From the sequence record NC_042013.1: a DNA stretch of 64,000 nucleotides; one strand, given 5' to 3'. Shown piece after piece: positions 31,191 through 53,223 of the stretch (its first letter is position 1; each line of letters begins with the position of its first letter). Below the pieces are notes generated by a model. The model worked only from the letters and a program-made list of their open reading frames with translations, made no database searches and was not told where the DNA came from. Position numbers and translations under genes: made by a program.

Positions 31191-32111
31191 TTAGTCTCCT
31201 GAACACGCTACTCTAAACGAATTTTCTAAAAATCCTTGCATTGTACCTTGAATAGTATCGGTGTTTTCAAGAATATCAGAAAACGTTTCAAATGACATGT
31301 TATCAACGTGGGTTTCACGTACAATATTAGCAAAAACTTCGTATGAACAGCATGTTTTTGCTTTTATAAAGTTGCAAATAAATTGATCATCACCATCAAA
31401 ATATTTGTCTGCGGTGAATTTCAAAATATCAATTGGATGTTCATTTGGGTATTTAATAAAGGTGTTCGTCATTTTCCAAACGATGTTGCTCAAATCTAAC
31501 GTTGTACGTGGTTCAGAAACCGCCACAGGAGGCTGTACAATAGCAAGAACAATAGATTCGGTCAATACGTTATCAACGATCTCAAGCCCTTCCTTGACGA
31601 TCTTAGCCGTAGCAATAGGGCTTTTAATTCCACGTGGCATAAGTTTTTTATCAACGAAGTCGTCATACATTTTTTGACTTGCTAACATTGTTTTACTGTT
31701 AGAAGACATGTATGCGATAATTTTGAAAGATTCGATGTCATACTCGGTGCATCCACCAAACATTTCTTTTGGTTTCCAACAATTTTCTTTGAAAACTTTT
31801 ATTGCTTCAGACTTTTTAGGAAAACCAAGCATGACTTTATCTTCATCATACTTTTTTCCATCAGACGTTAATTGGTGAATTACGTATACTTTAGAACCCT
31901 CAACTGGTTTAGGACGAACCCATACGTCAAGATTTTCACCATCCGGTGAATTGGTTCCTAAAATATATCCATATGTTGCCGTGACTTTACGACGCCATTT
32001 TTCCCCAAGATGATTAGTACCAGAGCGGTATGTTCCAGCCTTATCTTCTATAGAAATATCCAGACCATCGAATTTTAATTTGCCAACGACCTTACCCTCG
32101 AATACGATCAT
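31191..32111 (-). CDS. Inorganic-pyrophosphatase-like (InPase-type) domain protein
   Basis: YGYI.GT..PDGENLDVWV and DEDKVMLGF match the family I PPase YG..P.T...DGD.LD / D.K.I layout. Confidence 0.7.
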   Translation of the reverse strand: MIVFEGKVVGKLKFDGLDISIEDKAGTYRSGTNHLGEKWRRKVTATYGYILGTNSPDGENLDVWVRPKPVEGSKVYVIHQLTSDGKKYDEDKVMLGFPKKSEAIKVFKENCWKPKEMFGGCTEYDIESFKIIAYMSSNSKTMLASQKMYDDFVDKKLMPRGIKSPIATAKIVKEGLEIVDNVLTESIVLAIVQPPVAVSEPRTTLDLSNIVWKMTNTFIKYPNEHPIDILKFTADKYFDGDDQFICNFIKAKTCCSYEVFANIVRETHVDNMSFETFSDILENTDTIQGTMQGFLENSFRVACSGD

Positions 32112-32494
32112 TTAGAAAGGTTCCTTTTTACCGTATTCATTGCAGACTTTTTAATTTTTTCTTTTTCAACTTCTTTTTGATCTTTGTTGACGTAACGATC
32201 AGATTTTACGCTGTTTAGAAAGTAGATATACATTTCACCGCCATCCTCAGGGTTTCTTTCAACCTTTAGGATTGGCTTAATACGAGACGCTACCGATAAA
32301 ATCAAATCATTATCAATGATAGTACCCTGATATTCAGGTTCATTGTTTAAAAATTCTATAACTGATGCTACCGGAACTTTGTCTTTACCGGCTGAAATCA
32401 ATGGTGTTATATAATTTACAATGTCTTTTTGAGCTTGACGTTTAATGTCAAGCTCTTCAAACAAAGATGATTCAAGTAAATCGATAAGTCTCAT
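32108..32494 (-). CDS. Hypothetical, probable head-associated protein
   Basis: ATG 32494 with AAGGA RBS; N-terminus MRLIDLLES. Confidence 0.75.
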   Translation of the reverse strand: MRLIDLLESSLFEELDIKRQAQKDIVNYITPLISAGKDKVPVASVIEFLNNEPEYQGTIIDNDLILSVASRIKPILKVERNPEDGGEMYIYFLNSVKSDRYVNKDQKEVEKEKIKKSAMNTVKRNLSK

Positions 32495-36356: not shown

Positions 36357-36602
36357 ATGGGTGAGGTTATTAAGACAGTCTTGGCCGTACTGAATGGTGG
36401 CGGTTCAGAAGCGGTCATAGCGTTGCTTCTTATAATTGTAGCTTACTTAGGCTATAGTAATTATAGACTGCAACAAGATTTTAGAAATAAAGACGAACGC
36501 ACCGACAAGGTGGTTGAAGACTATCATACAAGTAATAGTATCTTGACTGAAGCAATTCAACGTTTGAATCAGTTGATATCAGAAATCAAGAATAAATTAT
36601 GA
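36357..36602 (+). CDS. Small single-pass membrane protein with coiled-coil tail
   Basis: Hydrophobic AVIALLLIIVAYLGY segment, then a charged helical C-terminus. Confidence 0.7.
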   Translation: MGEVIKTVLAVLNGGGSEAVIALLLIIVAYLGYSNYRLQQDFRNKDERTDKVVEDYHTSNSILTEAIQRLNQLISEIKNKL

Positions 36603-38209
36603 TGAAATGGTTTAAGAATAAAAAAGATATTAAGAACAAAGAACTCGATGAAAAAATAAAATCGAGTACGAGTCAGCTTGTCGAAGCCGCCAACATTACT
36701 ATTAGTCTGGCAGAAGAAATTACGGATGCTTTAAAAAATAGTATTGAAGATTCTTATAAAGAATTAAGTGCTACTGTTGAAATCATACCAGACGCTATTT
36801 TTATTGTACGTCGCTCAGGTATCATTGAAAGTGCTAACTCCCAAGCAAAAAACTTATTTGGGATAGAGGAACTTCTGCCTGAAACTTCCATTTTCGATTT
36901 TATAAGCTTTAATAGTACCAAGATTAGAAATACCGAAGAATTAGAAAAAATATCTACGGTTATTAATGAAAAATTAACATTTTCATCTGATACCGATGTT
37001 CACAATATTCGTGGTAAAACCATTGATGGTAAAACTATTACGTTGAAAGTAAAAGTTAACTATTTCAAAAAATCTGATAAAATTGTCAGATATGTTGTCT
37101 TAATGGAAAATATAACGGATCGAATTGAACAAGAAAAACGATTCGTTACTCTTTATAATTATAACAATGGAATAATATCAGCTATACCACAAACATTGAT
37201 TACCGTCGACATGGCAGGGGTTATAAAAAGCATTCATAATAAAGGATCATTTATCGATATCTCTTTTATGGATAAGAACATAACAGATGCATTTGATGAA
37301 ATATTAGTAAAACAATTTCGTCATTTCAAAAAGAATCCGATGGTTTATAATAATTCACAAATACACTTTACTAAAATAATAGATGGAATCGAGAAAAACT
37401 ATACATCTAAAATTTTGGAATGTCAGTCCGAAGCCTTATTTGTTATTTCAGATATTTCGGAGATTGTAGAAACAAAAAGAGAACTAGATCAAACCGAAGA
37501 TTATTTCCGCGCTTTTGAAAAAGCATCATCAGAGGCGATGTTCATTCATATTGACGATCAATTGATTCGATGGAATGATAATATGAGAAATCTTTTTGGT
37601 TATAGTGACGAAGATATGGAAACTCTTAGACCTGTTGATTTTATTACACCTCTTGACCGTGCTAAATATTTGTCAAATATTTCTGATGATGAAAATAAAT
37701 CATATGAAATATTAATGGTCAATAAAAAAGGTGATTCTATTGAAGCTTCAGTTACTGATAACATCATTACTTGGAATGATAAAAAAGCACATATCAAAGT
37801 TATTAGAGATATTAGCGATCTTACCAACGTGAAGAAAATGCAAACGGTTAGCCGCGAGCGCTATGCGACTATTATGAATAACACTATTGACTTGGTATTC
37901 AGTCTTAGTGAAAAATTTGAATTGAAATTTTCAAACGTTACTTTTGATCAATTTGTTGGTGAAGGAAAAGTACATTCTGTTATTGATTTTATTGATAGCC
38001 GTGATTTGGCACGTTTCATCGGTGATTTCAGTAACCTTAAAGACCCATCAACCGCTATACGTATCCTAACACGTATTAACAGAACCGGTATCGTTCGTCA
38101 TATTGATATTATTGCAAATCGCATACATGATGCTGAAGGAAACTTCGTTGAGTATCAGTGTGTTGGACGTGACGTTACATATTATATTGCAAAATCTTCC
38201 AAAGAATAA
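36599..38209 (+). CDS. Multi-PAS-domain protein with no output domain
   Basis: Four PAS/PAC-like units: IIPDAIFIV..ANSQAKNLFG; AIPQTLITVD; SSEAMFIH..WNDNMRNLFGY..IRDISD; NTIDLVFSL..VGRDVT. Confidence 0.82.
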   Translation: MMKWFKNKKDIKNKELDEKIKSSTSQLVEAANITISLAEEITDALKNSIEDSYKELSATVEIIPDAIFIVRRSGIIESANSQAKNLFGIEELLPETSIFDFISFNSTKIRNTEELEKISTVINEKLTFSSDTDVHNIRGKTIDGKTITLKVKVNYFKKSDKIVRYVVLMENITDRIEQEKRFVTLYNYNNGIISAIPQTLITVDMAGVIKSIHNKGSFIDISFMDKNITDAFDEILVKQFRHFKKNPMVYNNSQIHFTKIIDGIEKNYTSKILECQSEALFVISDISEIVETKRELDQTEDYFRAFEKASSEAMFIHIDDQLIRWNDNMRNLFGYSDEDMETLRPVDFITPLDRAKYLSNISDDENKSYEILMVNKKGDSIEASVTDNIITWNDKKAHIKVIRDISDLTNVKKMQTVSRERYATIMNNTIDLVFSLSEKFELKFSNVTFDQFVGEGKVHSVIDFIDSRDLARFIGDFSNLKDPSTAIRILTRINRTGIVRHIDIIANRIHDAEGNFVEYQCVGRDVTYYIAKSSKE

Positions 38210-38232: not shown

Positions 38233-38267
38233 AAAGAGAAAAGCCGGATATCGCTATGATATCCGGC
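38233..38267 (-). terminator. Rho-independent terminator
   Basis: GCCGGATATC-5 nt-GATATCCGGC stem followed by TTTTCTCTTTC on the minus strand. Confidence 0.8.
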
Positions 38268-38297
38268 CATCCCTTGTTTACTGTATCCGAGGAAGGA

Positions 38298-39444: not shown

Positions 39445-39487
39445 CGTTTCGATGTTTTTGTTATACACGAAGGAGAAATAATGTCAA
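39445..39487 (-). promoter_or_regulatory. Diverged copy of early promoter
   Basis: TTGACA-N16-TATAAC...CATCGAAACG; left arm of the inverted repeat lost. Confidence 0.72.
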
Positions 39488-41820
39488 GAATTTTTCTTAC
39501 GTTTCTTTGCGAACTCGTAAATACCCCAATCGCCATCTGGATCAAAGCCTACACCAAGACCGCCTACATTTCCATTTGTTGTAGCAACGTTACCTGCTCC
39601 GGTTGATCCAGCGGAGGACGTTTCAGTAATAGGCACTTTTTTTAGTCTAAAGAAAACAGAACGTGGTAGATTATTCTCTTGTAATTCGTATCCTAAATCT
39701 TTAAATTCAGCCGCAAGTTTTTTACCCATTGCTGAATATAGTTTTGCAAGTCCATTAGATTTATCGCCTACAAAAAACAACATGTCAGGCTTGTTATCAA
39801 CGATGTATTTTTTAATGCGATTTTTAACAATTCCTAATACTTTGGGAGCATCTTTTAATAATGTATTGGATGGTTTAAATGACGAACCTTGTTTGTCATC
39901 ATCTGGATTAACGAACCCATAATCAACTTCTACATATCGTGGTGATGGCGTGAAACGAAGGAAATAATCAATTCCATTAAACGTGAAATTACCCTCGTCG
40001 TGTTGTATAGTACCACCACCGGGGTCTTTGCGTTTCCCTTGTTTAAGATCAATATCTACTGACGTATCAAATAATTCGTTTAGATTATTAGTAAAATGAT
40101 AAAAACGTTCCCCGTGCTTATCAACAATATCAAGCTTCAAATTTAGTTTTGCCGCAAGTCTTTTTGAAAGAGCATCATATAACTTAACACGTGAATAATC
40201 GTCTAAATTCGCCGCAAATTTATATGGAGGAGTGAATTTTGATTTAATGATATTGTATACAGCAGAAAATACCTTGACTGAATTATTCCACAGGTTCTTT
40301 TTATCAAAATTTTTATTGGAATCATCTCCAGCCAAACTGAATAAGATTTCATCCCCTGCAATCAGACGAATATTGTACGTAATACCATCAACAGTGAAAT
40401 CATATCCGCGTGTAGCGATAGTTGTTTCAACTTCTGTATCAAATAATTCGGTCAAATTCTTTTGACTATTAATCCATTTTGACGCCGCAGGTGATTTGCT
40501 TGGCGAATTAATAAACGAATCTATACGTTTCGCTACTCCATTCAAATCTAATTTCGTATTGCTACTATCAACAATGAATAGATTGTTTCCAAAATAGTTC
40601 TGAAAACGGCCAAGGTTGGCCTGTGTTTGCTTCCATATCGTTTCAACAACATCAGGTGCAACTGTTCTTGAACGCTTGCTATTGCGTTCTATGGCCGTTT
40701 CCATATCGGTGTTGACGAATAACAAACCGGTATCATATCCTAACTTTTTAAGGTCGTTTGATAAGGTAATGATTTTATCATAATTACGACCGGTTCCGTC
40801 AATGACAAGAGGGAGTCTTCCATCAAGGTATAAATCCAATTGAGATTTATTAAGACTATGAGCTTTTGATTTAACGTTCCTATCCCAAGAATCCATGTTT
40901 TTAAGATCAAGGTCATTCTTTGAGGCAAGAAATTCTATAAATCGATCAACGTTTACCTCTTTGAAACCCTTGTGCGCCAAAAGTTTTTTAGAAATGGTTG
41001 TTTTACCAGAACCGGGACCACCGGCAGTAAAAATAGCCTTAAAAATGTGCTTGTCATTTACACCCTCGGTAACCTCGGATGTATTGGAAAACATTGGAAC
41101 GATTTCTTTCAAATACGTGTCCGATTTAATAAACAACACGTTCCCGCTCATCCACACTTCACGATTATCAGGTATACTTGCGACGTCATTAGTTATCGTG
41201 AAACCGTTTTTAGAAGGCTCCATAAAATCTGCATATGCTTTCCATAGATTATCGCCGCGTCTGAATCCAATATAGTCGATGTCATATGGAATTTTGATAT
41301 TTTGGTGCGTTACTAATGATTTGCTTATTTTATCCAAATCGTCTTTAAGTGCACTGCTGTTAGACGAGCTAAGCGGTATACCTGTCTCTCGTGATAGATC
41401 ATAAAGAGCGCTATTAATGTCAGCAGGGCTTGGATCACCAAAGGATTCCCAAAAATCAATTTCAGAACATACACCAATTGACTGATGTTCTAAAGGAATT
41501 ACTACATATAAAGAGCCATATCCAATAGACCTATTCAATGAGGTTGAACATATAAAGGACTTAGAACGTTTAGGATAATTACTCCACGCCGGATCGGCAT
41601 CAACAATTAATGTATAATAATTTTCGGTGTTGGCAGAACGACGACTAATCTCATTACCCGTTCCAAGTACGTATGCTCCGGTATCTTTCATACCACGATA
41701 TATAGGATTATCTCCACGAGTCTCCACATATGATTTGATAACGTCATGGTATTTCTTTAAAACACCATTACCATCAACAACGTCATAACCTGTTGCTTCG
41801 TTAAGATCATTCCATTTCAT
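39484..41820 (-). CDS. Array gene 1: ART-like (type A) + P-loop kinase + two Alt-N-like modules (polyprotein-like)
   Basis: MKWNDLNE; PIYRG, FICSTS, NREVW; AGGPGSGKT and LVIDGTG; linkers VTEG, LTELFDT, LNELFDT, ITET. Confidence 0.75.
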   Translation of the reverse strand: MKWNDLNEATGYDVVDGNGVLKKYHDVIKSYVETRGDNPIYRGMKDTGAYVLGTGNEISRRSANTENYYTLIVDADPAWSNYPKRSKSFICSTSLNRSIGYGSLYVVIPLEHQSIGVCSEIDFWESFGDPSPADINSALYDLSRETGIPLSSSNSSALKDDLDKISKSLVTHQNIKIPYDIDYIGFRRGDNLWKAYADFMEPSKNGFTITNDVASIPDNREVWMSGNVLFIKSDTYLKEIVPMFSNTSEVTEGVNDKHIFKAIFTAGGPGSGKTTISKKLLAHKGFKEVNVDRFIEFLASKNDLDLKNMDSWDRNVKSKAHSLNKSQLDLYLDGRLPLVIDGTGRNYDKIITLSNDLKKLGYDTGLLFVNTDMETAIERNSKRSRTVAPDVVETIWKQTQANLGRFQNYFGNNLFIVDSSNTKLDLNGVAKRIDSFINSPSKSPAASKWINSQKNLTELFDTEVETTIATRGYDFTVDGITYNIRLIAGDEILFSLAGDDSNKNFDKKNLWNNSVKVFSAVYNIIKSKFTPPYKFAANLDDYSRVKLYDALSKRLAAKLNLKLDIVDKHGERFYHFTNNLNELFDTSVDIDLKQGKRKDPGGGTIQHDEGNFTFNGIDYFLRFTPSPRYVEVDYGFVNPDDDKQGSSFKPSNTLLKDAPKVLGIVKNRIKKYIVDNKPDMLFFVGDKSNGLAKLYSAMGKKLAAEFKDLGYELQENNLPRSVFFRLKKVPITETSSAGSTGAGNVATTNGNVGGLGVGFDPDGDWGIYEFAKKRKKNS

Positions 41821-41840
41821 ATCAAAAATCCCTTTATGAA

Positions 41841-41847
41841 TATTTAT
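41841..41847 (-). promoter_or_regulatory. Putative late promoter (ATAAATA) for array gene 1
   Basis: Overlaps the stop of array gene 2, about 20 nt before ATG 41820. Confidence 0.45.
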
Positions 41848-43316
41848 TTGATAAGATCATTAAGATATTTCTGATCAAACACAAGTAGTTTACCGGAAAC
41901 CCATACTTCCTTATCAACCGGGATATTGGTTTTTTTAGTCAATTCAAACCCGTTACGTTCAGGGTTAATGTAGTTGACGTACCAGTCGAAAATGTTCTGG
42001 TCGGAGGGAATACTAAGTTCTGAATATAATTCGTTTACTGCCGGGTTATCGCGGTAGCTAGACAACGTAATAAAATCATCTTTCATTTTTTCAAAATCAG
42101 TTTCACTGATTTTTATACCTACGTCATTTGCGGCAGCGAATATCATATTGTTAATCATGTCGATTGGGTTGCCATTAATTTCAGCAAACGATGCCCATAT
42201 ATCACCTTCAGGGCATACACCAAAATCTTGATTTTCAAGTGGAACAACTACATATGTTTCACCAGCCGATTCAGCATAATATTCAACAACATCCAACGAT
42301 GATCCGCATATCAATGATTGTGAGCGTTTAGGATATGCTGACCATTCTGGAAGATTATCGATCATTAATGTATAATAATTCCGACCATTACGGCTTTTTC
42401 TTTTTATATCACCGGTATTAAAAATGGTGTAACCGTTCTCTTGCGGTTTCATACCACGATATATAACTGGACCATTTTCTACAATCTTCTTAATTTTTTC
42501 TTTGTTTTTAGTCAAAAAATCTGGAACATTGTCTAACGGTTGTGGTGATGTATTATTCCATTCGGAGCGAATCTTTAAAAATACAGCAGCATCAAGTGCA
42601 ACATACTTTCCACCTGAAATCATTATTTCGTTTTTAGAACGAATAGCTTCCTCGAGATTAGTTGTTTTGTATAGTTCATTGATCTTCTTTGCAAGATGTT
42701 CTTTATCAAACGCCAACCTACTTAGAACAGACGTAATTTTGTTTTCAGGTATCTTGTTTAGCCAACCCAATATTGATGATGCAGTTGAAATCAATTTTTT
42801 ATTAATTTCTTTTAGCGAGAATTTCTCTGGTAGTTCTTGTAATTTGTTATTATTAAACCATGAAAGGTCGTCATGGGTAAGAACTTTTTTGTTGTCGTTT
42901 TTAAACTTTATGAATCCATTCGAGTATAAGTATGTTTTAAAGTTATAAAGATCACGAATAGATGGTGAATACGAGAATGAAAAATCGCCAATGGGAAAAA
43001 TAACATATACTGACCCATAACGAGTTGCGTCTCCAAGATCACCGGTACAAAAAATACTATTATCTCGATTCGACTCTATGCCAGCGGCTTTAAACCCCTC
43101 AATGAAAACATTATGGTAGAACGGAGATGAATCTACCGATTGTCTATCAGTACGGATATTCTTTATCAAATACTCAGAATCTTCGCGCATACCTCTATAT
43201 AGAGGTAGTTTTAGAAAATTTGGATTTTCAGACAAATACTTTTTGCAATGTGTATTGATATATTCTATGATGTTTGAAACATCTAAGTCGTTTTCATTAA
43301 GCTGTTCCCAACGCAT
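41844..43316 (-). CDS. Array gene 2: tandem ART-like domains (type B + type A)
   Basis: ATG 43316 MRWEQLNE; PLYRG/IFCTG/NEIMI then VIYRG/LICGSS/KEVW. Confidence 0.72.
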   Translation of the reverse strand: MRWEQLNENDLDVSNIIEYINTHCKKYLSENPNFLKLPLYRGMREDSEYLIKNIRTDRQSVDSSPFYHNVFIEGFKAAGIESNRDNSIFCTGDLGDATRYGSVYVIFPIGDFSFSYSPSIRDLYNFKTYLYSNGFIKFKNDNKKVLTHDDLSWFNNNKLQELPEKFSLKEINKKLISTASSILGWLNKIPENKITSVLSRLAFDKEHLAKKINELYKTTNLEEAIRSKNEIMISGGKYVALDAAVFLKIRSEWNNTSPQPLDNVPDFLTKNKEKIKKIVENGPVIYRGMKPQENGYTIFNTGDIKRKSRNGRNYYTLMIDNLPEWSAYPKRSQSLICGSSLDVVEYYAESAGETYVVVPLENQDFGVCPEGDIWASFAEINGNPIDMINNMIFAAANDVGIKISETDFEKMKDDFITLSSYRDNPAVNELYSELSIPSDQNIFDWYVNYINPERNGFELTKKTNIPVDKEVWVSGKLLVFDQKYLNDLIK

Positions 43317-43317
43317 A

Positions 43318-44088
43318 TCAAATTCCCTCAATATCAAGTAATGCAGTGTCTTTTAAAAATAGTACGTTACCAGAAACCCATACCTCATTATCATTAAAAT
43401 CAGAAGGCACTTCGCTATTAAGTAAGAAATTATTAGTGGTTGGATCAAGTAATTTGGAAATCCATTCGAACGTTTTGCCGGGATAATCCATCATTGAAGT
43501 TCCGAGCCAACGATATTCCTCTGAGAAATATTCTTTGTAAGTATCGTCGCCTTTTTTCTGTTTATCAATAAACGAAAATGTTTGCTTTAATGCGGTTGGT
43601 GAAAGTGTCCAAGGTGAATCGTACTTATCCCCTATACCTTTCATTAATGTATATGCGTCGGCTAACATATGAGCAAATGAATTGATTGATTGCCCACCAG
43701 ATTCGATTGTGAAATTAAAAGATACCCAAAAGTCCGACGCTTGACAAATACCATACTGTTGACCCTCTAATGGTATAACGTGATATATTTCGCCATATTT
43801 TCTTGCTTTGGCAACTGATGTAGTGCATATAAATGATAACAAACGATCAGGATATGCGTCCCAAGACGGTAACATTTGATCGATAATAGTATTAGGGTAT
43901 GAAAATGTATTAGCGGATTCGCGTCGTTTTTTTGGATTACCGACAATCAATGGTCCAGTATCTCTCATACCACGATAAACAAAGCGCCCTTTATTAACGT
44001 AGGATCGAATTATATCGTGATATTCGGTTGGGATATTTTCAAAATTACTATACCAATCTGATTTTTCAGTAAGTTGTTCCCAACGCAT
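43318..44088 (-). CDS. Array gene 3: ART-like, type A
   Basis: MRWEQLTE; VYRG, FICTTS, NEVW. Confidence 0.72.
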   Translation of the reverse strand: MRWEQLTEKSDWYSNFENIPTEYHDIIRSYVNKGRFVYRGMRDTGPLIVGNPKKRRESANTFSYPNTIIDQMLPSWDAYPDRLLSFICTTSVAKARKYGEIYHVIPLEGQQYGICQASDFWVSFNFTIESGGQSINSFAHMLADAYTLMKGIGDKYDSPWTLSPTALKQTFSFIDKQKKGDDTYKEYFSEEYRWLGTSMMDYPGKTFEWISKLLDPTTNNFLLNSEVPSDFNDNEVWVSGNVLFLKDTALLDIEGI

Positions 44089-44089
44089 A

Positions 44090-44884
44090 TCAAGTATCCT
44101 TTTTAGAATATTTATTATTCATAAGGTCTTGAAATTTATCATTATGAATGAATAATACTCTATCAGATAACCATACTTCGTTTTTTCCAAAATGGGCGGT
44201 ATCTATATTAGTTGTAACTTCGAAACCATTTATGTCTGGATCAAAAAGATACGTTAGACCTTTCCAAACGCCATGTTTTTTGAAATATGCAAACATATCG
44301 TTTACTTGCTTAATATCATACCAATGATCACGGTTTAACGCATCAAATTCTTCTTGTGATGTGTTTTTCACATACGTTTCAAGCATATCCATAACTGATG
44401 AAACGGTTTTTGGATTTTCAGGAAGGTATTGGTCTATTGTATTTCTTAGTAATTCTTGTAAAACTTGATTGAACATGTTTAAAGAACGTAAACCAATTTC
44501 GTTGATGCTTTTGAAACCAAACCAAAAATCCTCGGCAGGGCAAATACCTATTGGCTGTAAATCCAATGGGATAACAACATATAATCGTCCATAACCAAAT
44601 GCTACCGTTGAATCTGTTGTGCATATAAATGATTTAGATCGCTTAGGATATGGTTTCCATTGTGGTAAAAAGTTATCTATAAGCGTGGTATAGAAATTAT
44701 ACGTGTTTTTTGATTTGCGTTCTCCTGTAGAACCATTACCGATTATATATGGGGACGTTCCTTTCATTCCACGATAGATGTAATTACCTGATGCGATATA
44801 ATCATCAATGATCGTTTTGTATTTTTCAGGGATTTCGTCTATATTCGTATATGAGAGTGACTCGGTAAGTTGTTCCCAACGCAT
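44090..44884 (-). CDS. Array gene 4: ART-like, type A
   Basis: MRWEQLTE; IYRG, FICTTD, NEVW. Confidence 0.72.
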   Translation of the reverse strand: MRWEQLTESLSYTNIDEIPEKYKTIIDDYIASGNYIYRGMKGTSPYIIGNGSTGERKSKNTYNFYTTLIDNFLPQWKPYPKRSKSFICTTDSTVAFGYGRLYVVIPLDLQPIGICPAEDFWFGFKSINEIGLRSLNMFNQVLQELLRNTIDQYLPENPKTVSSVMDMLETYVKNTSQEEFDALNRDHWYDIKQVNDMFAYFKKHGVWKGLTYLFDPDINGFEVTTNIDTAHFGKNEVWLSDRVLFIHNDKFQDLMNNKYSKKDT

Positions 44885-45663
44885 TATTTGGTTTCCTTAT
44901 GGTAACGTTTTAACTCGGTGTATCTTTCAAACGGTATAGCCAAATATTTATCACCGGTTATCATAATTTCATTACCGGATACAATCGCTTTTACTAAGTC
45001 GGTTGTTTGGTATTCTTTTACTATTTCACTAAAATTAGTGTCTATTCTTATAAGATTTAATTTTGAAAAATAATAACTTATTGATTTTGGAACATTATCT
45101 GGATACAACTTTATCAAATCATTAGTAGAAATATGACCAGAAAGTTTTTCTAATCCTCTATTTTCAGCACGGGCATCTATTGATATTCGAATCGATTCTG
45201 GAAATTCATCAACATTCAATGTTTTGTTATCGGATGGCACAAATTTAGATGCATCAGTTTGGTTATATAATGCAACAGTTAAGTCCCTTATTTCAGGACT
45301 CCACGTATATTCAAAATTTCCCATAGGATAAACAACGTGAACCTCGCCATATTCCTCCGCGTTGTAAGACTCGCCTATGCAAAACATAGAATTAGATCGT
45401 ATAGCCTTGAAACCTTGAGAAATAAATTCTTCGTCCAGTTCTTTTTGGACTTGTTTCGCCGTATCTTTAGGTAAACGATCTTTTCTAATTGTATTAATTG
45501 ATGCAATTGTACTTGGTGTTTTCATTCCTCGGTATAAACGATTTGTCTCAAAATATGGATTTTCATGAATATATGGTCGACAATGTTCATTAACAAATTT
45601 CAATAGATCGCTATATGTTCGAATAGGCGCTGTAGTGCTTTCTGTCAACTGTTCCCATTTCAT
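44884..45663 (-). CDS. Array gene 5: ART-like, type B
   Basis: ATG 45663 MKWEQLTE; LYRG, MFCIG, NEIMI. Confidence 0.72.
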   Translation of the reverse strand: MKWEQLTESTTAPIRTYSDLLKFVNEHCRPYIHENPYFETNRLYRGMKTPSTIASINTIRKDRLPKDTAKQVQKELDEEFISQGFKAIRSNSMFCIGESYNAEEYGEVHVVYPMGNFEYTWSPEIRDLTVALYNQTDASKFVPSDNKTLNVDEFPESIRISIDARAENRGLEKLSGHISTNDLIKLYPDNVPKSISYYFSKLNLIRIDTNFSEIVKEYQTTDLVKAIVSGNEIMITGDKYLAIPFERYTELKRYHKETK

Positions 45664-46418
45664 AACGCAGTATCCTCGTAATATGCTTTTATTTTTCTCC
45701 ATTCTATCATTTGAATGAATAGAACTTTTCCAGATAACCAAACTTCTCTGTCATCTGGAATGGATGATATATCTGTTGTGATTTTGAAATTATTTTTACG
45801 TGGGTCGATTAGCTTCACATAAAAATCATAAAGACTATCACCAATATTGTAACCCATTTCCTCGAAGTCTTTTACCGCCACCACGTGCGGATCAAGTGGA
45901 ATAGATTTCGATATATCGTTAAGATCATTATGAAATTCGTTATAATTTGTTTGTGAAATTGGTCTTTTTAAATAAAATCTTGCTAAGTCAGATATCATAC
46001 GGTTTATTGCGGACGGGAGATTTACAAATGATTCCCAAAAATCCATTGCGGGGCATACACCAATTTCTTGATTTTCTAATGGAATAACAACATAAGGAAC
46101 ACCGAACGCGGATGCGTAAGAATATTCCGTTGAACATATAAAAGATTTAGAGCGCTTAGGATATTCCTCCCAAGACGGATCATTGTCCATAATCAACGTA
46201 TAGTAATTTTCGGTGTTTTTAGATTGGCGATTCATTTTATTCCCATCACCAAATCCAAAAGGCCCAATAGATTTCATTCCACGATAAATCGTTTGTTTGC
46301 CTTTGGCAATAGGTTCTATGACGGGGCCATACTTTTCAAGTAAGGTTTCAATATCGAAATCACCGACCTCATATGCTTTAGAGGTATCACCTTTTTCGGT
46401 TAACTGTTGCCACTTCAT
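45660..46418 (-). CDS. Array gene 6: ART-like, type A
   Basis: MKWQQLTE; IYRG, FICSTE, REVW. Confidence 0.72.
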   Translation of the reverse strand: MKWQQLTEKGDTSKAYEVGDFDIETLLEKYGPVIEPIAKGKQTIYRGMKSIGPFGFGDGNKMNRQSKNTENYYTLIMDNDPSWEEYPKRSKSFICSTEYSYASAFGVPYVVIPLENQEIGVCPAMDFWESFVNLPSAINRMISDLARFYLKRPISQTNYNEFHNDLNDISKSIPLDPHVVAVKDFEEMGYNIGDSLYDFYVKLIDPRKNNFKITTDISSIPDDREVWLSGKVLFIQMIEWRKIKAYYEDTAL

Positions 46419-47218
46419 AAACTATCCCAATCTATTTCTTCAATCGATTCATACCTAATAAACATAACTTTTCCTGAAATCCATACCTCAGAATCATGGT
46501 CGTCTGGATGCTTGCTTAAAGAGAACTTATTTTTAACAGGGTCGAAAATCTGCGCTAATCCTTTTTGAACGTCGCCAGCTTCTTTGAAATATTTATATAA
46601 CGCAAATTCATCTTGAAACGTTTGTAGGTCGTCTGACGTTGATGGAAAAGAGTCGTAATCATAATTCGTTTTCTTAATGGCTTGCGACAGTATTGCCATT
46701 GAATTAAAAAATGAATCTGCGCTCGCCGCCATTATTTCTTTCTTTTTAAGAATATAATAAAGTCGACCTAAAATTTGGTTGAAATAGTGTAGGCTACCGT
46801 TGGAAATGATTTGTTCAAGAGTTTCATCAAATGCATACCAGAAGTCGTCAGACGGGGCGACACCGAAGTCTTGATTTTCTAATGGAATTACTACATACAC
46901 TGTGCCATACGAGCCAGCCGTTGATTCGTGTGTAGTGCATATAAAGCTTTCTGACCTAAGGGGAAATTTTTCCCATTGTCTTCTAAGAATACGGTCAACT
47001 ATATATGTATAATAATTAGTAGTATTTTTTGATTTGCGTGACATCTTCGTGCCATCACCAAAAATGATAGTTCCTGTATCTTTCATACCTCTATAAACGT
47101 ATGATTCGGACATCGTTATATACTCTTTTACAATCCTACGATATTTTTCAGGTATTTCATTAACGATAGAATATCCCTTTTCGGTATCGCCAGCTTCGTT
47201 TAATTGGTGCCATCTCAT
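46415..47218 (-). CDS. Array gene 7: ART-like, type A
   Basis: MRWHQLNE; VYRG, FICTTH, SEVW. Confidence 0.72.
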   Translation of the reverse strand: MRWHQLNEAGDTEKGYSIVNEIPEKYRRIVKEYITMSESYVYRGMKDTGTIIFGDGTKMSRKSKNTTNYYTYIVDRILRRQWEKFPLRSESFICTTHESTAGSYGTVYVVIPLENQDFGVAPSDDFWYAFDETLEQIISNGSLHYFNQILGRLYYILKKKEIMAASADSFFNSMAILSQAIKKTNYDYDSFPSTSDDLQTFQDEFALYKYFKEAGDVQKGLAQIFDPVKNKFSLSKHPDDHDSEVWISGKVMFIRYESIEEIDWDSL

Positions 47219-47976
47219 TTGAATTTTTCTTTCATCTGTTCGAATATATCAGGTTCTATTGCTAAGTATGAAGTCCCGGCTATCATAATTTCGGAACCAC
47301 TTTCAATAGCATCTTCGAGATCATTATTTGAATAATAATTTTTAAAATTATCTATTAATACATTTTGGTCTATTTCCAATTTCTGAAAAACTTCATCAAT
47401 ATCATCTGCACGAAACCATAAACGAAGATTATTGCCTGTTTCTTTAAAAATAACGTCTTTCATATAATTAAATGAAAACTTTTTTGGAACTTTGTAGTCC
47501 CCAAGCTCAGACGGTGACAAGTCAAGATCATCAATTGTTAGAACGTCCTTATCGGCATTTTTAAATGCAATACCACCATTGAGGTATATCGTTGGTAACA
47601 CATTAAGCAAATCACTATATGATGATGACCAAGTATATTCAAAATTTCCTATAGGAAAAATTACCATAGTGTATCCGTATTGGTCCGCTACGCTTTTACG
47701 TCCGGTAACAAACATACTGTTTGATCTACGAGCGACGAACCCTGCTTTTTTTAGAGTGTCATCATATAGATCATGAAAGTACCTTTTCATATCTGTTGGT
47801 TCACGATCTGTTCTAATATTTTTGATAATTATGTCTTCACTATCAGATATCCCTCTATATAATGGACTATTCATCCAATCGGGGTTTTCTCGTAAATATT
47901 CAGAACAATTTTTCTTAATAAAAGAAACAAGATTTCTTTTAGTAACATTAGCCTCTGTTAATTGATCCCAACGCAT
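47215..47976 (-). CDS. Array gene 8: ART-like, type B
   Basis: MRWDQLTE; LYRG, MFVTG, SEIMI. Confidence 0.72.
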   Translation of the reverse strand: MRWDQLTEANVTKRNLVSFIKKNCSEYLRENPDWMNSPLYRGISDSEDIIIKNIRTDREPTDMKRYFHDLYDDTLKKAGFVARRSNSMFVTGRKSVADQYGYTMVIFPIGNFEYTWSSSYSDLLNVLPTIYLNGGIAFKNADKDVLTIDDLDLSPSELGDYKVPKKFSFNYMKDVIFKETGNNLRLWFRADDIDEVFQKLEIDQNVLIDNFKNYYSNNDLEDAIESGSEIMIAGTSYLAIEPDIFEQMKEKFK

Positions 47977-48752
47977 TAGATCGCCTTTCCATATTTTACA
48001 AATTCTCTAAACAAACGAAGTGATATTGCTAGATATTCTTTACCGGTTATCATTATTTCGTTTTTAGATTCCATTGCTGCATTGAAGTCAGTATCTTGAT
48101 ATGATTTGGCAAGGTCTAACATTTGTTCAGAGCCTTGTAACATATTTTGTTTATGAAAAAATGTTCTTAAATCTTCATTCCAAGCACGATCACCTATAAT
48201 CTTAATTAGTTCGTTTGATGACATGACATCTGGCATTTCTATTCCTTGTTTTTTGAATTCGGAATTAATATAACCTGCTAATGATGAACTCATCTCTCTA
48301 ACGTAAATATTTTTTTCATCGGAAGGAACAATATAAAGCATATCCTTGATGTCGACGGTCAAATCATCAAATTTAGGATTCCACGTAAAATCAAAATGAC
48401 CGATAGGAAAAATAACGAATTCTTTTCCAAATTCAACTGCTGATCCTTGTGAACTTGTACAAAAAATAGAATTTCCGCGTAATGCCTTAAATCCATTTGC
48501 AGAAAGGTAATCATCTATTTGAGTTTGAATTAAATTGGAAGAATCACGTGGTTTTCTATCTTGGCGAATTTGACGTATCTGTATGTCTTTCAATCCAGCA
48601 ATCTTTATTCCACGGTAAAGAGGTCTCTTTACCCAATTAGGATTTTGTTGAACATATTCTTTACAATGAGTGTTGACGTATTCGGTTAATTGTTCTAAGG
48701 TTGTTATATCTTGAACATCCGTAACGGCTTCTGTAAGTTGATGCCATTTCAT
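47976..48752 (-). CDS. Array gene 9: ART-like, type B
   Basis: MKWHQLTE; LYRG, IFCTS, NEIMI. Confidence 0.72.
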   Translation of the reverse strand: MKWHQLTEAVTDVQDITTLEQLTEYVNTHCKEYVQQNPNWVKRPLYRGIKIAGLKDIQIRQIRQDRKPRDSSNLIQTQIDDYLSANGFKALRGNSIFCTSSQGSAVEFGKEFVIFPIGHFDFTWNPKFDDLTVDIKDMLYIVPSDEKNIYVREMSSSLAGYINSEFKKQGIEMPDVMSSNELIKIIGDRAWNEDLRTFFHKQNMLQGSEQMLDLAKSYQDTDFNAAMESKNEIMITGKEYLAISLRLFREFVKYGKAI

Positions 48753-49507
48753 GATAAATCCTCCAACATATCCATATATACGTGATGCTTCAATGCCAAA
48801 TATTTATCGCCTGTAATCATAATTTCGGTGTTGTTCCATATTGCATCGTCAATTTTATCGGTTCTATATAATTCTTTAAAACCGTCAGCGAGATGGTCAA
48901 TATCGATTTCAAGCTTATCCACTAAGCTTTCTTCATTAGAATCTATTAGATCATAAATTTTATACCAATCGATCTTAAAATTTTCATTCAGTTCTTTAAA
49001 AGAAATTTCGGTAATATCGGGAGGAAGATTATCATTTGTTAACTTTTTCGCCTCTACCCTTGTAAGAATAGTATTAACGTTTTTAAAACGAAAAAGGCCA
49101 CGACGAGCAAGGCGTCCGAATGCTGTGTATAAATCTCTATATTCCGTAGTATAAGAATATTTAAAATCGCCTATTGGAAAAACAACATATACATCACCGT
49201 ATCCAATTGCTGCATTTTTATTACCAGTGCAAAAAATACTATTAGAACGGATAGCCGTAAGACCAGCACGTTTCATAGCTTCATCATATACTTTATGTAT
49301 ATATTGATTAGAACTTAACGGTTTTCTGTCTTGGCGAATAGTTTGTATTGAAACTTCACCGCGTGAAGACATTCCTCTATAAAGAGGATAGCTCATAAAA
49401 TCAGGATGTTCTTTGATATATGGCTGGCAATTTTGTTGAATGAATGCCATGATATCATCTGAATCTTTTAATAGAATCTCGTTTTCAATTAGCTGGTGCC
49501 ATCTCAT
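48749..49507 (-). CDS. Array gene 10: ART-like, type B
   Basis: MRWHQLIE; LYRG, IFCTG, TEIMI. Confidence 0.72.
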   Translation of the reverse strand: MRWHQLIENEILLKDSDDIMAFIQQNCQPYIKEHPDFMSYPLYRGMSSRGEVSIQTIRQDRKPLSSNQYIHKVYDEAMKRAGLTAIRSNSIFCTGNKNAAIGYGDVYVVFPIGDFKYSYTTEYRDLYTAFGRLARRGLFRFKNVNTILTRVEAKKLTNDNLPPDITEISFKELNENFKIDWYKIYDLIDSNEESLVDKLEIDIDHLADGFKELYRTDKIDDAIWNNTEIMITGDKYLALKHHVYMDMLEDLS

Positions 49508-50592
49508 CGTTTGATTTCCTTTGCTATATTTTGAAAACGTGTATAATTGCTATATTTAATAGCGATATATTCTTTTCCGCTAATCATAATTTCGCATCCC
49601 GATTTGATAGCAGATACTAAATCGGTTGTTTTATATGTATCTAACGTTTTATCTAATTCTGGATTGTATTTTACTTTATGCTTACGTACCATTTCGACAA
49701 ATATTTCTTCTGGTACATCTTCAGAACTACCATACGCCTTTAAAATGTCGTTTGTTGATACTCGATAATTTTCGTGTTTTACGTCCCTTTTAAGTCTAAG
49801 ACTGAGTTGTTTATAATAATCACTACCAATTACTATTATTCTTTCATCATCTTTTATGACAGTAGATGCCCCTGCAATATTGGTTGTCATATCCAAAATC
49901 TTTGGGTTCCAAGTAAAATCAAATTCACCAATTGGAAATATTACATAGGTATTTCCATATGTATATGGTACATCCGAATCACCTGAACAGAATATAGAAT
50001 TGTCACGATTAGCCTTTATACCGCGATTGCTTAGCTCTTTAACGATTTTGTTATGGGTTTCTAAATCAGTATCTAATGGCTTTCGGTCGGTTCGTATAGC
50101 CGAAACAATGATAGGTTCGGACGAGGAAATACCTCTATACAACGGATTGTTGTTGAAATCTGGATTCATACGCAGATATGGTTGACATTTTTTTCTAATA
50201 AATTCTGCAACATTATTATCATTTAATTCAGCTGTTTCTGTAATAGACCCTTTAGGTAAACGATACATGCCATAAGAGATTGAGAAATCTTTGTCTTTGC
50301 CCTTATTGACAACGAACCCAAAACGTTTATAGAAATCAATTAACCTTGAAACAGAGGTTGTTCCTTGAATTTTTTCAGGAGTTAACAATACGATTTTGTT
50401 ATTTTGATCTGCATAAGCACAGATATATTTCATAAGAATAGAGCCGGTCCCCTCGCCGGGGGTTATGGCTTTAAGCATATGGATAATTATTTTGTCGTTA
50501 CGTTCCGTTACAGAAATAGACAAGCCAAGGTCGCGAGCTTTTGCTTCAATATATGTTTCCTCGGCTGTTTCTAACAATTGAAATAATCTCAT
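49504..50592 (-). CDS. Array gene 11: GNAT acetyltransferase + ART-like type B
   Basis: MRLFQLLE; GEGTGSILMKYI and LIDFYKRFGF (GNAT); ITET linker; LYRG, IFCSG, CEIMI. Confidence 0.75.
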   Translation of the reverse strand: MRLFQLLETAEETYIEAKARDLGLSISVTERNDKIIIHMLKAITPGEGTGSILMKYICAYADQNNKIVLLTPEKIQGTTSVSRLIDFYKRFGFVVNKGKDKDFSISYGMYRLPKGSITETAELNDNNVAEFIRKKCQPYLRMNPDFNNNPLYRGISSSEPIIVSAIRTDRKPLDTDLETHNKIVKELSNRGIKANRDNSIFCSGDSDVPYTYGNTYVIFPIGEFDFTWNPKILDMTTNIAGASTVIKDDERIIVIGSDYYKQLSLRLKRDVKHENYRVSTNDILKAYGSSEDVPEEIFVEMVRKHKVKYNPELDKTLDTYKTTDLVSAIKSGCEIMISGKEYIAIKYSNYTRFQNIAKEIKR

Positions 50593-51377
50593 TTCTTTTT
50601 CCTCGGGTCTTCTTTGAGGATGTCTGTTAGCGCATGCTTCATCGCTGTTTTTACATCATAACCATTCTTTTTTATAAGTTCTTTCGTTTTTTTCAAAAGT
50701 GCCGCTTTATCGGCATTTTTAGATTCTGGATTTAATACCAGCGCGTCCTCATAAGAACGATCTTTTGCAATTTTTTCAAGATGTACAAGGATATCCGCAT
50801 TTGGCGTACGCATTCGTAATGCTTGTAATAGACGAGTTACGACCAAACGTTTTTCACGTTCATCCATATCAGCCCAAGAGGAAATGATGCGACGGCAGGA
50901 TTTTAGATTACCATTGGAAATTTTAAGCTGCTTCTCGAGATTCATTAAGAACCCTCCTTCGCCAGCTTTATTACGTTTACCATATGATATTTCGCGTAAG
51001 CGATTTTTGATAGCATTCATATTGAGATGCATATTTTTCAAGAATAATTTGCTTGCTGTCTGGTCTTTAAGAAATTCCGTATCAAAACCAGATAGAATGT
51101 GGAGATACACATATAGGTCGGTTGAAGCCGTATTGAAACGTTTAAACCCGCCATACTTCATCGTATGAGCAGCGTGACCGACTCCCGCAGCCTCATATCC
51201 AAATTCGTCTAACATGATAAAGAGAACGAGGATGTGGATAAATGCCAATTCGGAAATATCTTTGGCAGTATACTTTCTGATTTGGCCAGTTTGACGAATA
51301 ACATTGCTTTCATTCAACTGACCAAGTTCTTGCAGAAAATTATTGCATGGCTCGTTGGACTTTGATTCTGATGTCAT
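50589..51377 (-). CDS. Hypothetical, probable virion protein
   Basis: ATG 51377 with GAGG RBS; FLQELGQLNES N-terminal segment. Confidence 0.7.
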   Translation of the reverse strand: MTSESKSNEPCNNFLQELGQLNESNVIRQTGQIRKYTAKDISELAFIHILVLFIMLDEFGYEAAGVGHAAHTMKYGGFKRFNTASTDLYVYLHILSGFDTEFLKDQTASKLFLKNMHLNMNAIKNRLREISYGKRNKAGEGGFLMNLEKQLKISNGNLKSCRRIISSWADMDEREKRLVVTRLLQALRMRTPNADILVHLEKIAKDRSYEDALVLNPESKNADKAALLKKTKELIKKNGYDVKTAMKHALTDILKEDPRKKK

Positions 51378-52173
51378 CAGGGATTTCCTCTTTAACATTA
51401 GTAATTCGATCCCAATACAACTTTGCAATTTCAGGGAGACGATCTTTCTGATATTTATTGAGAGCGGCCCATAATGAATCAAAATTATAAAATGCACTTT
51501 CGGTAGCTTCTGGAATAAGCCAGTTCATAACCCACTTCGGGTCATTGTTCATTTTCATCGGAAAATGAACAGGTTCGTATAATTGGCTATATGCCTCTTC
51601 AGTAATAACATCCATACGCTTTTTACGACCTTGGCCGTTTCGTTTCCATTCACGATGTTTGCAAATCCATTCAACACCGGTATCACTATTGAATACGGGA
51701 CCAGCACGAGCTATCAATTCCCCATCCTCAAATACTAATGAGTCTACACGATCTGCCACCATCGCACGAATAAGATTGGTTCTGAACAGACCTTTATGTT
51801 TTCCACCGTCGCTAAAATAGCCAAATACTTGCCATGCATAATTTCCAAACATCAAATCGCATTGAACAAATCCACGCGTTTCATCGCCGCGAATTGGGAG
51901 TTTAGTAAAAATTCTATGATTACCTGCTTGTACCCAAATATTATCCTCAGGCAAGGCTGCTTGTAGACGACTGGCAATCTCATCAAGATCAAATTTTCTT
52001 TCGTCCATATTAACATCAATGTCACCGGACGTTGGTTTCTTTCCACCTGATCCTAATAATGATGTTCGTAGATAATAATTATCAACATCAATTATCTTAC
52101 CCAAATAATTTAATGTTGGATAAATATCTTCACGATTGATACGCTGTGTACCATCAAATGCTCTACCGCCCAT
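51340..52173 (-). CDS. Pol-beta-superfamily nucleotidyltransferase
   Basis: LLGSGGKKPTSGDIDV (hGS..DxD) and third Asp in FVQCDLM; start MGGRAF at 52173. Confidence 0.72.
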   Translation of the reverse strand: MGGRAFDGTQRINREDIYPTLNYLGKIIDVDNYYLRTSLLGSGGKKPTSGDIDVNMDERKFDLDEIASRLQAALPEDNIWVQAGNHRIFTKLPIRGDETRGFVQCDLMFGNYAWQVFGYFSDGGKHKGLFRTNLIRAMVADRVDSLVFEDGELIARAGPVFNSDTGVEWICKHREWKRNGQGRKKRMDVITEEAYSQLYEPVHFPMKMNNDPKWVMNWLIPEATESAFYNFDSLWAALNKYQKDRLPEIAKLYWDRITNVKEEIPDDIRIKVQRAMQ

Positions 52174-53185
52174 CGACAATGTCCCTTCGAATTTCAGCAA
52201 ACAAGCTTAAAATTCTATTATTGTTGCAATCTTCTTTATACGGATAATACGTATAATTTTTAAATTTAGCTTTCACCTTAAATCGGCATTGAATATATTT
52301 TTTTAATAAATGATCAAGCCGTTCAACAGTCAATGGATTTGTTCTTTTCCTAAGCAGAATGTTCTTTACCAAACGATTTGCTTTATTCATTTTTTTAAAG
52401 CGATTATCGAAAATCTTTGTTTTGAACGTAGTTTCAAAAACCACCCCTTCAATAACTCGATCTTTGAAAACGCTTTCTATGAATGCTTGACCTACAGTAT
52501 TTACGTGTTTTTTGTATTTTTCGTATTCCATAGACCGAGCCTCTTTGATCGCCTCTTTCCAATCATCACTGGTTGCGAAATCTGGACGTTTGTTTATTTT
52601 TGCCCAAAGGATATTTTTTCTTGGAATTTTTACAGAACCAAATAGCACAGGTTCTTCTAAGAATGTCTTTAAAGAATCAAACAACTCAAATGTTGGGAAA
52701 TCAATCGGTTTATTAACGTCGATCTTCCAATTGATGACGTTGTTACCAGTAAACAATGTTTTTCCGTCGAGAGACAAAATTACGGGCAATTCTGTCCGTA
52801 ATTCCATATTAGGAATATGGAAACCTGTAGTGTTAGATGTGACGATTAGTTTAGGGAAATCTTTATACACAACGGTATTTGGTTGTGAACAATCGATTAT
52901 TTCAAAGCAAATTTCGGTTCCATTTGGAATGTTGCCGTCAATTTCGATTGTATCGAGTAGTTGTTCTAATGCCGAGTGAGCGTGTCTGAATGTATTAGTC
53001 CAAGATTTTATAGACCAATCTTTTAGATGGTAATAGGTAGCCGAATCTTTTCGTTGAACGAATCGGATACCTTTTTTGTCACGACCAATCTTTATAAAGC
53101 TACCGTCAAGCTTTTCCAGCAAGGTAACGGTATTCATAAATAAGTCGTTTGTCTGCTGTTGAGTTAGATCATAAATGTGTTTCAT
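52163..53185 (-). CDS. ATP-dependent ligase-like (RNA ligase-type adenylation domain) protein
   Basis: Motif I EKLDGS, motif III ICFEII, motif IV EGVVF. Confidence 0.62.
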   Translation of the reverse strand: MKHIYDLTQQQTNDLFMNTVTLLEKLDGSFIKIGRDKKGIRFVQRKDSATYYHLKDWSIKSWTNTFRHAHSALEQLLDTIEIDGNIPNGTEICFEIIDCSQPNTVVYKDFPKLIVTSNTTGFHIPNMELRTELPVILSLDGKTLFTGNNVINWKIDVNKPIDFPTFELFDSLKTFLEEPVLFGSVKIPRKNILWAKINKRPDFATSDDWKEAIKEARSMEYEKYKKHVNTVGQAFIESVFKDRVIEGVVFETTFKTKIFDNRFKKMNKANRLVKNILLRKRTNPLTVERLDHLLKKYIQCRFKVKAKFKNYTYYPYKEDCNNNRILSLFAEIRRDIVDGR

Positions 53186-53192
53186 ATGGTAT

Positions 53193-53221
53193 GTTATACA
53201 CTATACGAAACACGGTTTCAA
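53193..53221 (-). promoter_or_regulatory. sigma70-like promoter upstream of the ligase-like gene
   Basis: TTGAAA-N17-TATAAC. Confidence 0.55.
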
Positions 53222-53223
53222 AT

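Follow-up and report, generated by a model that had tools for sequence, protein, structure and literature searches.

The eleven genes gp53-gp63 of Agrobacterium phage Atu_ph07 form a tandem array that encodes 12 homologous domains, and our analysis supports the presence of a T4-style tag on this set of virion-packaged proteins. The array occupies positions 39484..50592, on the minus strand, of a 64,000-nucleotide stretch of DNA (hereafter, the window) that corresponds to bases 1-64000 of the phage genome (MF403008.1, 490,380 bp); the array sequence is 100% identical to the same coordinates of that record. On balance, we favour a reading in which gp53-gp63 are head-internal, tagged, protease-processed and diversified enzyme-like cargo that acts early in infection. 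We infer targeting of these proteins to the head, their cleavage at the tag and at internal sites, and their location inside the head. By analogy with other phages, the packaged proteins probably enter the host together with the DNA, and the conserved residues of the domain suggest that it is catalytic, with NAD+ use of the ADP-ribosyltransferase (ART) type being one possibility among several for the chemistry of the cargo.

All eleven minus-strand open reading frames (ORFs) are intact, with no internal stop codons. GenBank lists their products as hypothetical proteins AUZ94865-AUZ94875, which correspond, by the order of coding sequences (CDSs), to gp53-gp63 of Attai et al. (2018). At the ten gene junctions, neighbouring genes overlap by ATGA (six) or TAATG (two), or are separated by gaps of 1 nt (two) or 23 nt (one). 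A hidden Markov model (HMM) of the family detects exactly 12 domains, all of them in the 11 array ORFs and with domain E-values of 6e-45 to 4e-82, well clear of chance, and zero further domains across the rest of the 64-kb window. The ORFs, the junctions and the family HMM therefore agree with a preliminary description of this DNA, which had claimed a tandem array of 11 coupled genes and 12 domains at 39484-50592.

That description had also proposed that the array proteins are packaged in the virion. Indeed, Attai et al. (2018, Table S5) report all 11 from the virion, in an analysis in which electrospray ionisation tandem mass spectrometry (ESI-MS/MS) of virions purified with polyethylene glycol (PEG) identified gp53-gp63 from 3-31 unique peptides each, at 12-46% coverage. 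The surrounding region, CDS 31-76, holds 29 virion proteins, nearly all without an assigned function (Attai et al., 2018). The 11 array proteins share an N-terminus of the form M-[RK]-[WL]-x-[QD]-L-x-E. The last three residues of this octapeptide match (L/I)-x-E, the sequence at which the T4 prohead protease cuts, and the peptide is similar to the starts of T4 Alt and of the T4 internal proteins (IPs) IPI, IPII and IPIII, consistent with the capsid-targeting-type N-terminus that had been claimed. In T4, Alt and the internal head proteins enter the prohead by means of a capsid-targeting sequence of 10-20 residues, which is removed by gp21, and Alt is cleaved at ITE-6 and LTE-619 (PMC5694885); the GenBank note for T4 alt likewise states that six residues are cleaved off. 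The T4 sequences that we fetched begin MELITE/LFDE for Alt and MKTYQEFIAE/ for both IPII and IPIII, and the corresponding stretch of IPI ends in ITE/, with the slash marking the cleavage site. Atu_ph07 encodes a homologue of T4 gp21, gp204 (33% identity, E = 8e-15; Attai et al., 2018, Table S3), from a gene outside the window.

A six-frame scan of the window found the tag pattern only on the 11 array proteins and on gp43 (32108..32494, minus strand), an unrelated small virion protein of 128 aa that has the N-terminus MRLIDLLE and is negative with the family HMM. Since the tag is present both on gp43 and on the GNAT-like module with which gp63 begins, it is portable and no part of the domain fold. 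The tag is also unstructured in the two AlphaFold models described below, with a predicted local distance difference test score (pLDDT) of <50 for residues 1-7 in one and 1-10 in the other. Among 199 homologues from other phages, 165 begin with M-[RK], and M..[LIVMF]-x-E occurs within the first 12 residues of 154. Variants of the tag can be seen on two other virion proteins encoded in the window: gp47 (35838-36206) starts MRYKDLKLNE, and gp64 (50589-51377) has the sequence ...ELGQLNE near residue 23.

Two of the array proteins, gp63 and gp53, are fusions in which sites of the same type lie between modules (all coordinates of array genes and modules given here and below are on the minus strand). 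gp63 (362 aa, 49504..50592, 13 virion peptides) consists of the N-terminal tag, a GNAT-like module (residues 9-119, 50236..50568) that is flanked by LLE-8 and ITE-119, and a domain of the subtype that we call type B (residues 120-362, 49507..50235), delimited by the family HMM and motif alignment. The GNAT-like module matches Acetyltransf_7 at E = 0.005, which is below the curated cut-off, and phrog_10691, a profile of 3925 positions. ITE-119 marks the point where the GNAT-like module gives way to the type B domain, and a cut there predicts a type B domain of 28.0 kDa; in the gel of Attai et al. (2018), gp63, with a predicted size of 41.4 kDa, peaks in band 8 together with paralogues of 29-30 kDa. 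gp53 (778 aa, 39484..41820, 31 virion peptides) resembles a polyprotein. It comprises a type A domain (residues 1-250, 41071..41820, from motif alignment and the family HMM), a P-loop kinase of the Zeta-toxin/AAA_33/polynucleotide-kinase type (residues 261-405, 40606..41040; Pfam Zeta_toxin, 1.5e-14, and AAA_33, 2.7e-10; phrog_505 polynucleotide kinase, 8e-11), and two copies of a module of ~120 residues that are 28% identical to one another (E = 8e-5). The first copy (residues 459-582, 40075..40446) starts right after LTE-458, and the second, with a Gly-rich tail (residues 583-778, 39487..40074), right after LNE-582; an additional ITE-733 lies in the region of the second copy. The two linkers, LTE-458/LFDT and LNE-582/LFDT, closely mirror the ITE/LFDE site of T4 Alt.

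In the same gel (Attai et al., 2018), gp53, predicted to be 87 kDa, peaks in band 9 with proteins of ~21 kDa, matching the 21.6-kDa piece that is predicted from a cut at LNE-582, and gp54 peaks at about the position expected for its uncut size. The migration of gp63 and gp53 in the gel suggests cleavage of both at internal ITE, LTE and LNE sites. Two other proteins, gp42 (34.6 kDa) and gp44 (86 kDa), also peak in bands of much smaller proteins (Attai et al., 2018), and hence processing may be general in this cluster of virion genes.

The 12 domains fall into two subtypes of six. Type A comprises the N-terminal domain of gp53, the C-terminal domain of gp54, gp55, gp56, gp58 and gp59; type B comprises the N-terminal domain of gp54, gp57, gp60, gp61, gp62 and the C-terminal domain of gp63. 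The two types are homologous, with an hhalign probability of 99% over the first ~130 residues and a Foldseek template modelling (TM) score of about 0.5. Invariant in 12 of the 12 domains are Y-R-G, R60, R85, S88, G102, P109, D122 and E221 (gp53 numbering), with the last of these, the late Glu, lying within EVW throughout type A and within EIM throughout type B. Of the motifs that the preliminary description ascribed to all 12 domains, Y-R-G, the Gly of [YF]-G and the late Glu are thus invariant, whereas the Cys of F-[IV]-C is found in 11 of the 12 (gp60 has Val) and the Ala of A-x-x-[YF]-G in nine; the invariant R60, R85, S88, P109 and D122 had been overlooked. The strong variability that it noted before the Glu is borne out by within-type identities of 20-23% in that segment versus 43-46% in the core.

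Conservation extends well beyond the array. Across 200 family members (gp58 numbering), R64, R89 and D126 are each conserved in 100%, R46 in 99%, E225 in 98%, G47 and S92 in 96%, and C95 in 95%. This conserved polar set, together with the variable insert, points to an enzyme that would hold a phosphate-bearing substrate, with the insert giving target specificity. We also considered the conserved Cys as the nucleophile of a thiol peptidase, and rejected this candidate: the residue is missing from gp60 and several homologues, and a conserved His is absent. The array domains are acidic, most having an isoelectric point of about 4.7-5.8, and are therefore unlike DNA-condensing proteins.

Structure predictions were made for one representative of each type by AlphaFold2 with family alignments, giving a pLDDT of 93.6 and a predicted TM score (pTM) of 0.89 for gp58 (type A), and a pLDDT of 89.5 and pTM of 0.84 for gp62 (type B). 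When both models were compared to 350,542 PDB chains with Foldseek, the best matches had E-values of 0.2 and 1.0 at TM about 0.1, and the top entries (chains of proteasome, SMAD and galactokinase proteins) were noise; PDB sequences searched with phmmer and with profiles likewise returned noise only. The gp58 model has 28 significant matches in BFVD, all of which are uncharacterised phage proteins, mostly the Atu_ph07 paralogues and proteins of uncultured phages. Scans of the array proteins and 65 homologues with Pfam, NCBIfam, PHROGs and PADLOC gave no informative family save the gp53 kinase and weak GNAT matches, and Pfam and PHROGs scans of the longer homologues found no informative fusions such as those to Macro or Nudix domains.

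The family is large and nearly confined to phages. When 1.84 billion cluster representatives were searched with a profile, 9,671 proteins passed E<=1e-3 and 2,229 of these passed E<=1e-30; none of the matches with precomputed annotation has a Pfam domain. In a pattern-limited survey of bacteria and archaea that used one genome for each of 185,579 species, relatives were found on two contigs only, both from metagenome-assembled genomes. In 59 of the 72 loci recovered from IMG/VR, two or more copies lie within <=21 kb, and in the 12 largest arrays listed the copies are co-oriented without exception; members of the family mostly occur in arrays of 2-12 copies. The preliminary description knew of no array the size of that in Atu_ph07, but two unrelated uncultured phage contigs hold 11 and 12 domains, some of them clipped by contig ends. 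Several copies are also found in Salicola phage SCTP-2, in Ralstonia phage RsoM2USA and in two uncultured huge phages, and one metagenomic protein (P0088, 2645 aa) carries five to six copies of the domain and a GNAT-like stretch. We found no description of the family in the literature on genomes related to Atu_ph07, in comparative surveys or in a 2026 review. In a distant relative, a 492-kb metagenomic contig (L017), family copies are adjoined by co-oriented runs of ORFs of 85-125 residues, at about 5195-7767 and 11519-13949; similar runs occur in L018, and they may represent a second, tandemly expanded family of small genes.

The array is also present in a closer relative (L016, about 80% identity). 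The gene order in L016 is unchanged, gp60 is missing, and the homologue of gp53 is 653 aa long, 125 residues shorter than gp53. The ratio of nonsynonymous to synonymous substitution rates (dN/dS) is 0.05-0.19 in each of the ten orthologue pairs, with dS near saturation for several of them. Each paralogue is thus individually maintained by purifying selection while the copy number changes.

We propose that the N-terminal peptide, M-[RK]-[WL]-x-[QD]-L-x-E, would take each protein into the assembling prohead, as in T4, where a prohead protease of the gp21 type would remove the peptide after the Glu. Sites of the same type between modules would let the protease split the fusions gp63 and gp53 into separate domains. 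The resulting cargo would consist of alpha/beta domains of about 250 residues sharing R46, R64, R89, S92, D126 and E225 (gp58 numbering), in which the helical segment before the Glu strand varies and may supply target specificity. The analogy of T4 Alt, the internal proteins of T4 and the Dar proteins of phage P1 suggests that this cargo may exit the capsid along with the DNA and function at the very start of infection, either in taking over the host or in countering its defences. The enzyme-rich context of the domain is consistent with such a role: a P-loop kinase is fused to it in gp53, and GNAT-like modules accompany it in gp63 and in P0088.

Several points weigh against this proposal. Presence in the virion proves neither a head-internal location nor ejection, and the virions used for the published proteomics were PEG-purified only. 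The case for cleavage that is drawn from gel bands is indirect. Catalysis is argued from conservation alone, because the family has no functionally known homologue and no similar solved structure. Lastly, a promoter scan upstream of the array found no clear promoter, and the window shows no enrichment of TATAAATA, the consensus octamer of T4 late promoters.

Tagged virion proteins encoded in a cluster could instead be non-enzymatic. The inner body of phage phiKZ contains six abundant packaged proteins, five of which come from one gene cluster and are processed by its prohead protease, and gp53-gp63 might similarly serve as core, scaffold or "inner body" components for a large prohead with 490 kb of DNA. 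The clustering of paralogous virion proteins with protease-type sites fits this explanation, as does the fact that neighbouring virion proteins such as gp42 and gp44 run far under their predicted size. We nonetheless consider it improbable. The invariant residues include Arg, Asp, Glu and Ser, not merely Gly, Pro and hydrophobic residues; every paralogue is maintained separately at the dN/dS values given above; enzyme modules, a kinase and GNAT-like ones, are joined to the domains; and the domains as modelled are acidic, globular and alpha/beta, neither basic nor coiled-coil. Moreover, none of the BFVD matches listed is a phiKZ protein. An external location is also conceivable, given that Attai et al. 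(2018) link the excess of unassigned virion proteins in CDS 31-76 to the whisker morphology of Atu_ph07, whose capsid and tail bear hair-like fibres. It is, however, very hard to reconcile a part in fibres or whiskers with models that are compact and globular and show neither fibrous repeats nor folds of the lectin or Ig kind, with an N-terminal tag and inferred processing that are hallmarks of proteins enclosed with the prohead protease, or with the wide spread of the same family among phage contigs (72 IMG/VR loci and 9,671 clusters), and we regard such a part as extremely unlikely.

The preliminary description identified the domains as divergent ARTs or NADases of the R-S-E clade, forming an injected arsenal of NAD+-using enzymes, with the Arg of Y-R-G as the R, C-[ST]-[TS] as the equivalent of S-T-S, and the late Glu as the catalytic residue. 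The order of the three motifs is indeed that of ARTs, and the predicted elements that carry them match: Y-R-G is on a predicted strand (R in 99% and G in 96% of 200 members, although the motif alone is unspecific), S-F-I-C-[ST]-[TS] is at the end of a strand (93-96) that is followed by a helix (99-103), and the late Glu (98%) opens a beta-hairpin, E-h-h-h-x-G, after the variable insert. The predicted order of elements is the R strand, a strand, a helix, a strand ending in C-S-T, a helix, two strands, the insert and the Glu hairpin. The topology of C3-like ARTs seems compatible with this order, which is a lead rather than a test. T4 Alt, moreover, is a packaged ART that is processed at the same kind of site, and hhalign aligns the family with T4 ModA/ModB at a sub-threshold probability of 42-56% (P about 1e-4 to 3e-4), in a local match of 28-50 columns that takes in a helix and the YRG strand; with an enlarged profile of 35 ModA/ModB sequences the probability is 46%, and against a profile of the Alt ART domain it is below 1%. 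As a control, the 12-sequence profile of the Alt ART domain scores only 9-14% against ModA/ModB, less than the family does, although Alt and ModA/ModB alike are true ARTs, and the sequence-profile test therefore has little power; the YRG match is suggestive at most. Pfam recognises T4 Alt (ADPrib_exo_Tox, 5.8e-36) and gives no hit for T4 ModA or ModB, and negative Pfam results are therefore weak evidence. Pfam versions differ in this respect: the precomputed annotation places ModB homologues in PF26816, whereas the copy used for hmmscan misses T4 ModA and ModB. Set against these likenesses, no fold or family search places the domain with the ARTs. The preliminary description had suggested structure comparison as a check, and Foldseek retrieved no ART among the 350,542 PDB chains for either model, so that, as far as Foldseek can tell, the predicted fold is not ART-like; Alt, ModA and ModB are likewise absent from the 50 BFVD matches listed for the type A model. 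No ART family was found in Pfam for 65 members at E<=10, or with NCBIfam, PHROGs, PADLOC or profile searches of the PDB. At position -2 from the Glu, 200 members have Asp in 26%, Asn in 24% and Gly in 10%, and the conserved E/Q of ARTs is absent; nothing in the R-S-E triad corresponds to the most invariant residues, R64, R89 and D126; conservation at the [ST] positions that follow the Cys is only 88% and 76% (gp57 has C-I-G); and a longer hhalign alignment, when forced, leaves the other two motifs out of register. The main text of a 2022 survey of NAD+ and ADP-ribose systems in 21,191 viral proteomes makes no mention of Atu_ph07. Compared to ModA/ModB and Alt, then, the family is alike in having a Y-R-G strand after a helix, an invariant Glu late in the domain at the start of a hairpin, and a variable region before that Glu, but differs in lacking (E/Q)-x-E, in having the additional invariant R64, R89 and D126, and in carrying an insert of about 80-90 helical residues. 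Weighing all of this evidence, we regard relatedness to ARTs as doubtful, at roughly one chance in four or five, and an arsenal of R-S-E-clade enzymes as similarly unlikely, albeit less so than an inner body.

The remaining array genes mostly encode a single domain each. In the direction of transcription, gp63 is followed by gp62 (252 aa, type B, 48749..49507), which is the type B modelling representative and has 12 virion peptides, and by gp61 (258 aa, type B, 47976..48752), assigned with the family HMM and with 9 virion peptides. gp60 (253 aa, type B, 47215..47976, 10 virion peptides) is both the sole copy of the 12 that lacks the conserved Cys and the one whose orthologue is absent from L016. 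gp59 (267 aa, type A, 46415..47218, family HMM) and gp58 (252 aa, type A, 45660..46418), the type A modelling representative, have 7 virion peptides each. The true start of gp57 (259 aa, type B, 44884..45663, 9 virion peptides) is the ATG at 45663, and a TTG further upstream is not used. Two more type A proteins assigned with the family HMM, gp56 (264 aa, 44090..44884, 11 virion peptides) and gp55 (256 aa, 43318..44088, 3 virion peptides), precede gp54 (490 aa, 41844..43316, 15 virion peptides), in which the family HMM finds two domains, one of type B (residues 1-259, 42540-43316) and one of type A (residues 262-490, 41847-42533). The best terminator-like hairpin of the region (38242-38268, minus strand), made up of a stem of 11 pairs and a T-run after it, is situated downstream of gp50, far past the end of the array; the terminator scan, together with the promoter scans, showed no enrichment.

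Several neighbouring genes also have notable features. gp42 (31191-32111, the "mega protein") matches a module that occurs inside head proteins of very large size, among them a PHROG with the label DarB-like antirestriction, and gp44 (32523-34838), as noted above, is a virion protein with a predicted size of 86 kDa. Just upstream of the array are the three genes gp65-gp67 (51340-53943). The virion protein gp65 has a GSGG...DIDV stretch that looks, by eye, like that of a Pol-beta-type nucleotidyltransferase, with no match in the libraries; gp66 has a weak RNA-ligase match (E = 0.002); and gp67, an abundant virion protein, has a weak match to LPD3, a polyvalent-protein domain. The annotated gp64 and gp65 overlap by 38 nt. 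Amid the virion-protein cluster, on the opposite strand, is gp49 (36599-38209, plus strand), a protein of 536 residues that is annotated as a multi-sensor signal-transduction histidine kinase and is absent from the virion list. The combined kinase, GNAT-like, DarB-like, RNA-ligase and LPD3 context resembles a head-packaged, multi-enzyme "polyvalent" cargo that has been split into separately tagged genes.

The array has features in common with several known systems. Like IPI, IPII, IPIII and Alt of T4, the array proteins have a short propeptide running from M-[KR] to (L/I)-x-E, are present in virions of a phage with a gp21 homologue, and are encoded by a variable, expandable set of genes. They differ in that the Atu_ph07 cargo has no sequence or fold similarity to these T4 proteins, in the 8-residue length of the tag, in the number of related parts (12 homologous domains, as against three small unrelated IPs plus one ART), and in the proposed internal cleavage of multi-domain precursors. 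The polyvalent or P1 DarB-like proteins (Iyer et al., 2017, as cited by others) are alike in being virion-embedded collections of enzyme modules; the likeness extends to the P0088 chain with its 5-6 copies and GNAT-like module, to the gp42 module and to the weak LPD3 match of gp67. Atu_ph07 differs in having mostly separate, coupled and individually tagged genes, the largest being gp53 at 778 aa, and the family domain is not among the Pfam polyvalent-protein families. The inner-body and ejection clusters of phiKZ and SPN3US share with the array the clustering of paralogous head proteins that are cut after Glu by a gp21-related protease, and the phiKZ/SPN3US proteins are partly ejected. Their cleavage motif, however, is S/A/G-x-E rather than L/I-x-E, their propeptides are much longer, and no structural match to them is among the BFVD matches listed; Atu_ph07 also belongs to another group of phages, which is related to Rak2-like phages and has T4-like core genes.

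To our knowledge, few capsid-packaged proteins are understood, among them T4 Alt, IPI*, the P1 Dar proteins and the virion RNA polymerase of phiKZ. Because proteins packaged in the capsid precede phage gene expression, they decide the first round against host defences. The family described here is phage-restricted, very large and nearly always tandem, with a T4-type packaging tag and an enzyme-like conserved core. If the domain is catalytic, its chemistry would be either new or a very divergent form of NAD+ use, and the variable insert would amount to a naturally occurring set of variants in specificity. The tag provides a sequence rule with which the capsid cargo of uncultured huge phages may be predicted. 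We hold more tentatively to a broader interpretation, which we think has perhaps one chance in three: that these domains are an unrecognised enzyme superfamily without detectable relatives among solved structures, of which up to a dozen selected versions per capsid are directed at different host molecules or defences, or, in a narrower version, a very divergent clade of ARTs. If the superfamily interpretation is true, huge phages such as Atu_ph07 would carry a combinatorial, virion-delivered counter-defence arsenal that, with thousands of sequence clusters, is widespread in environmental phages.

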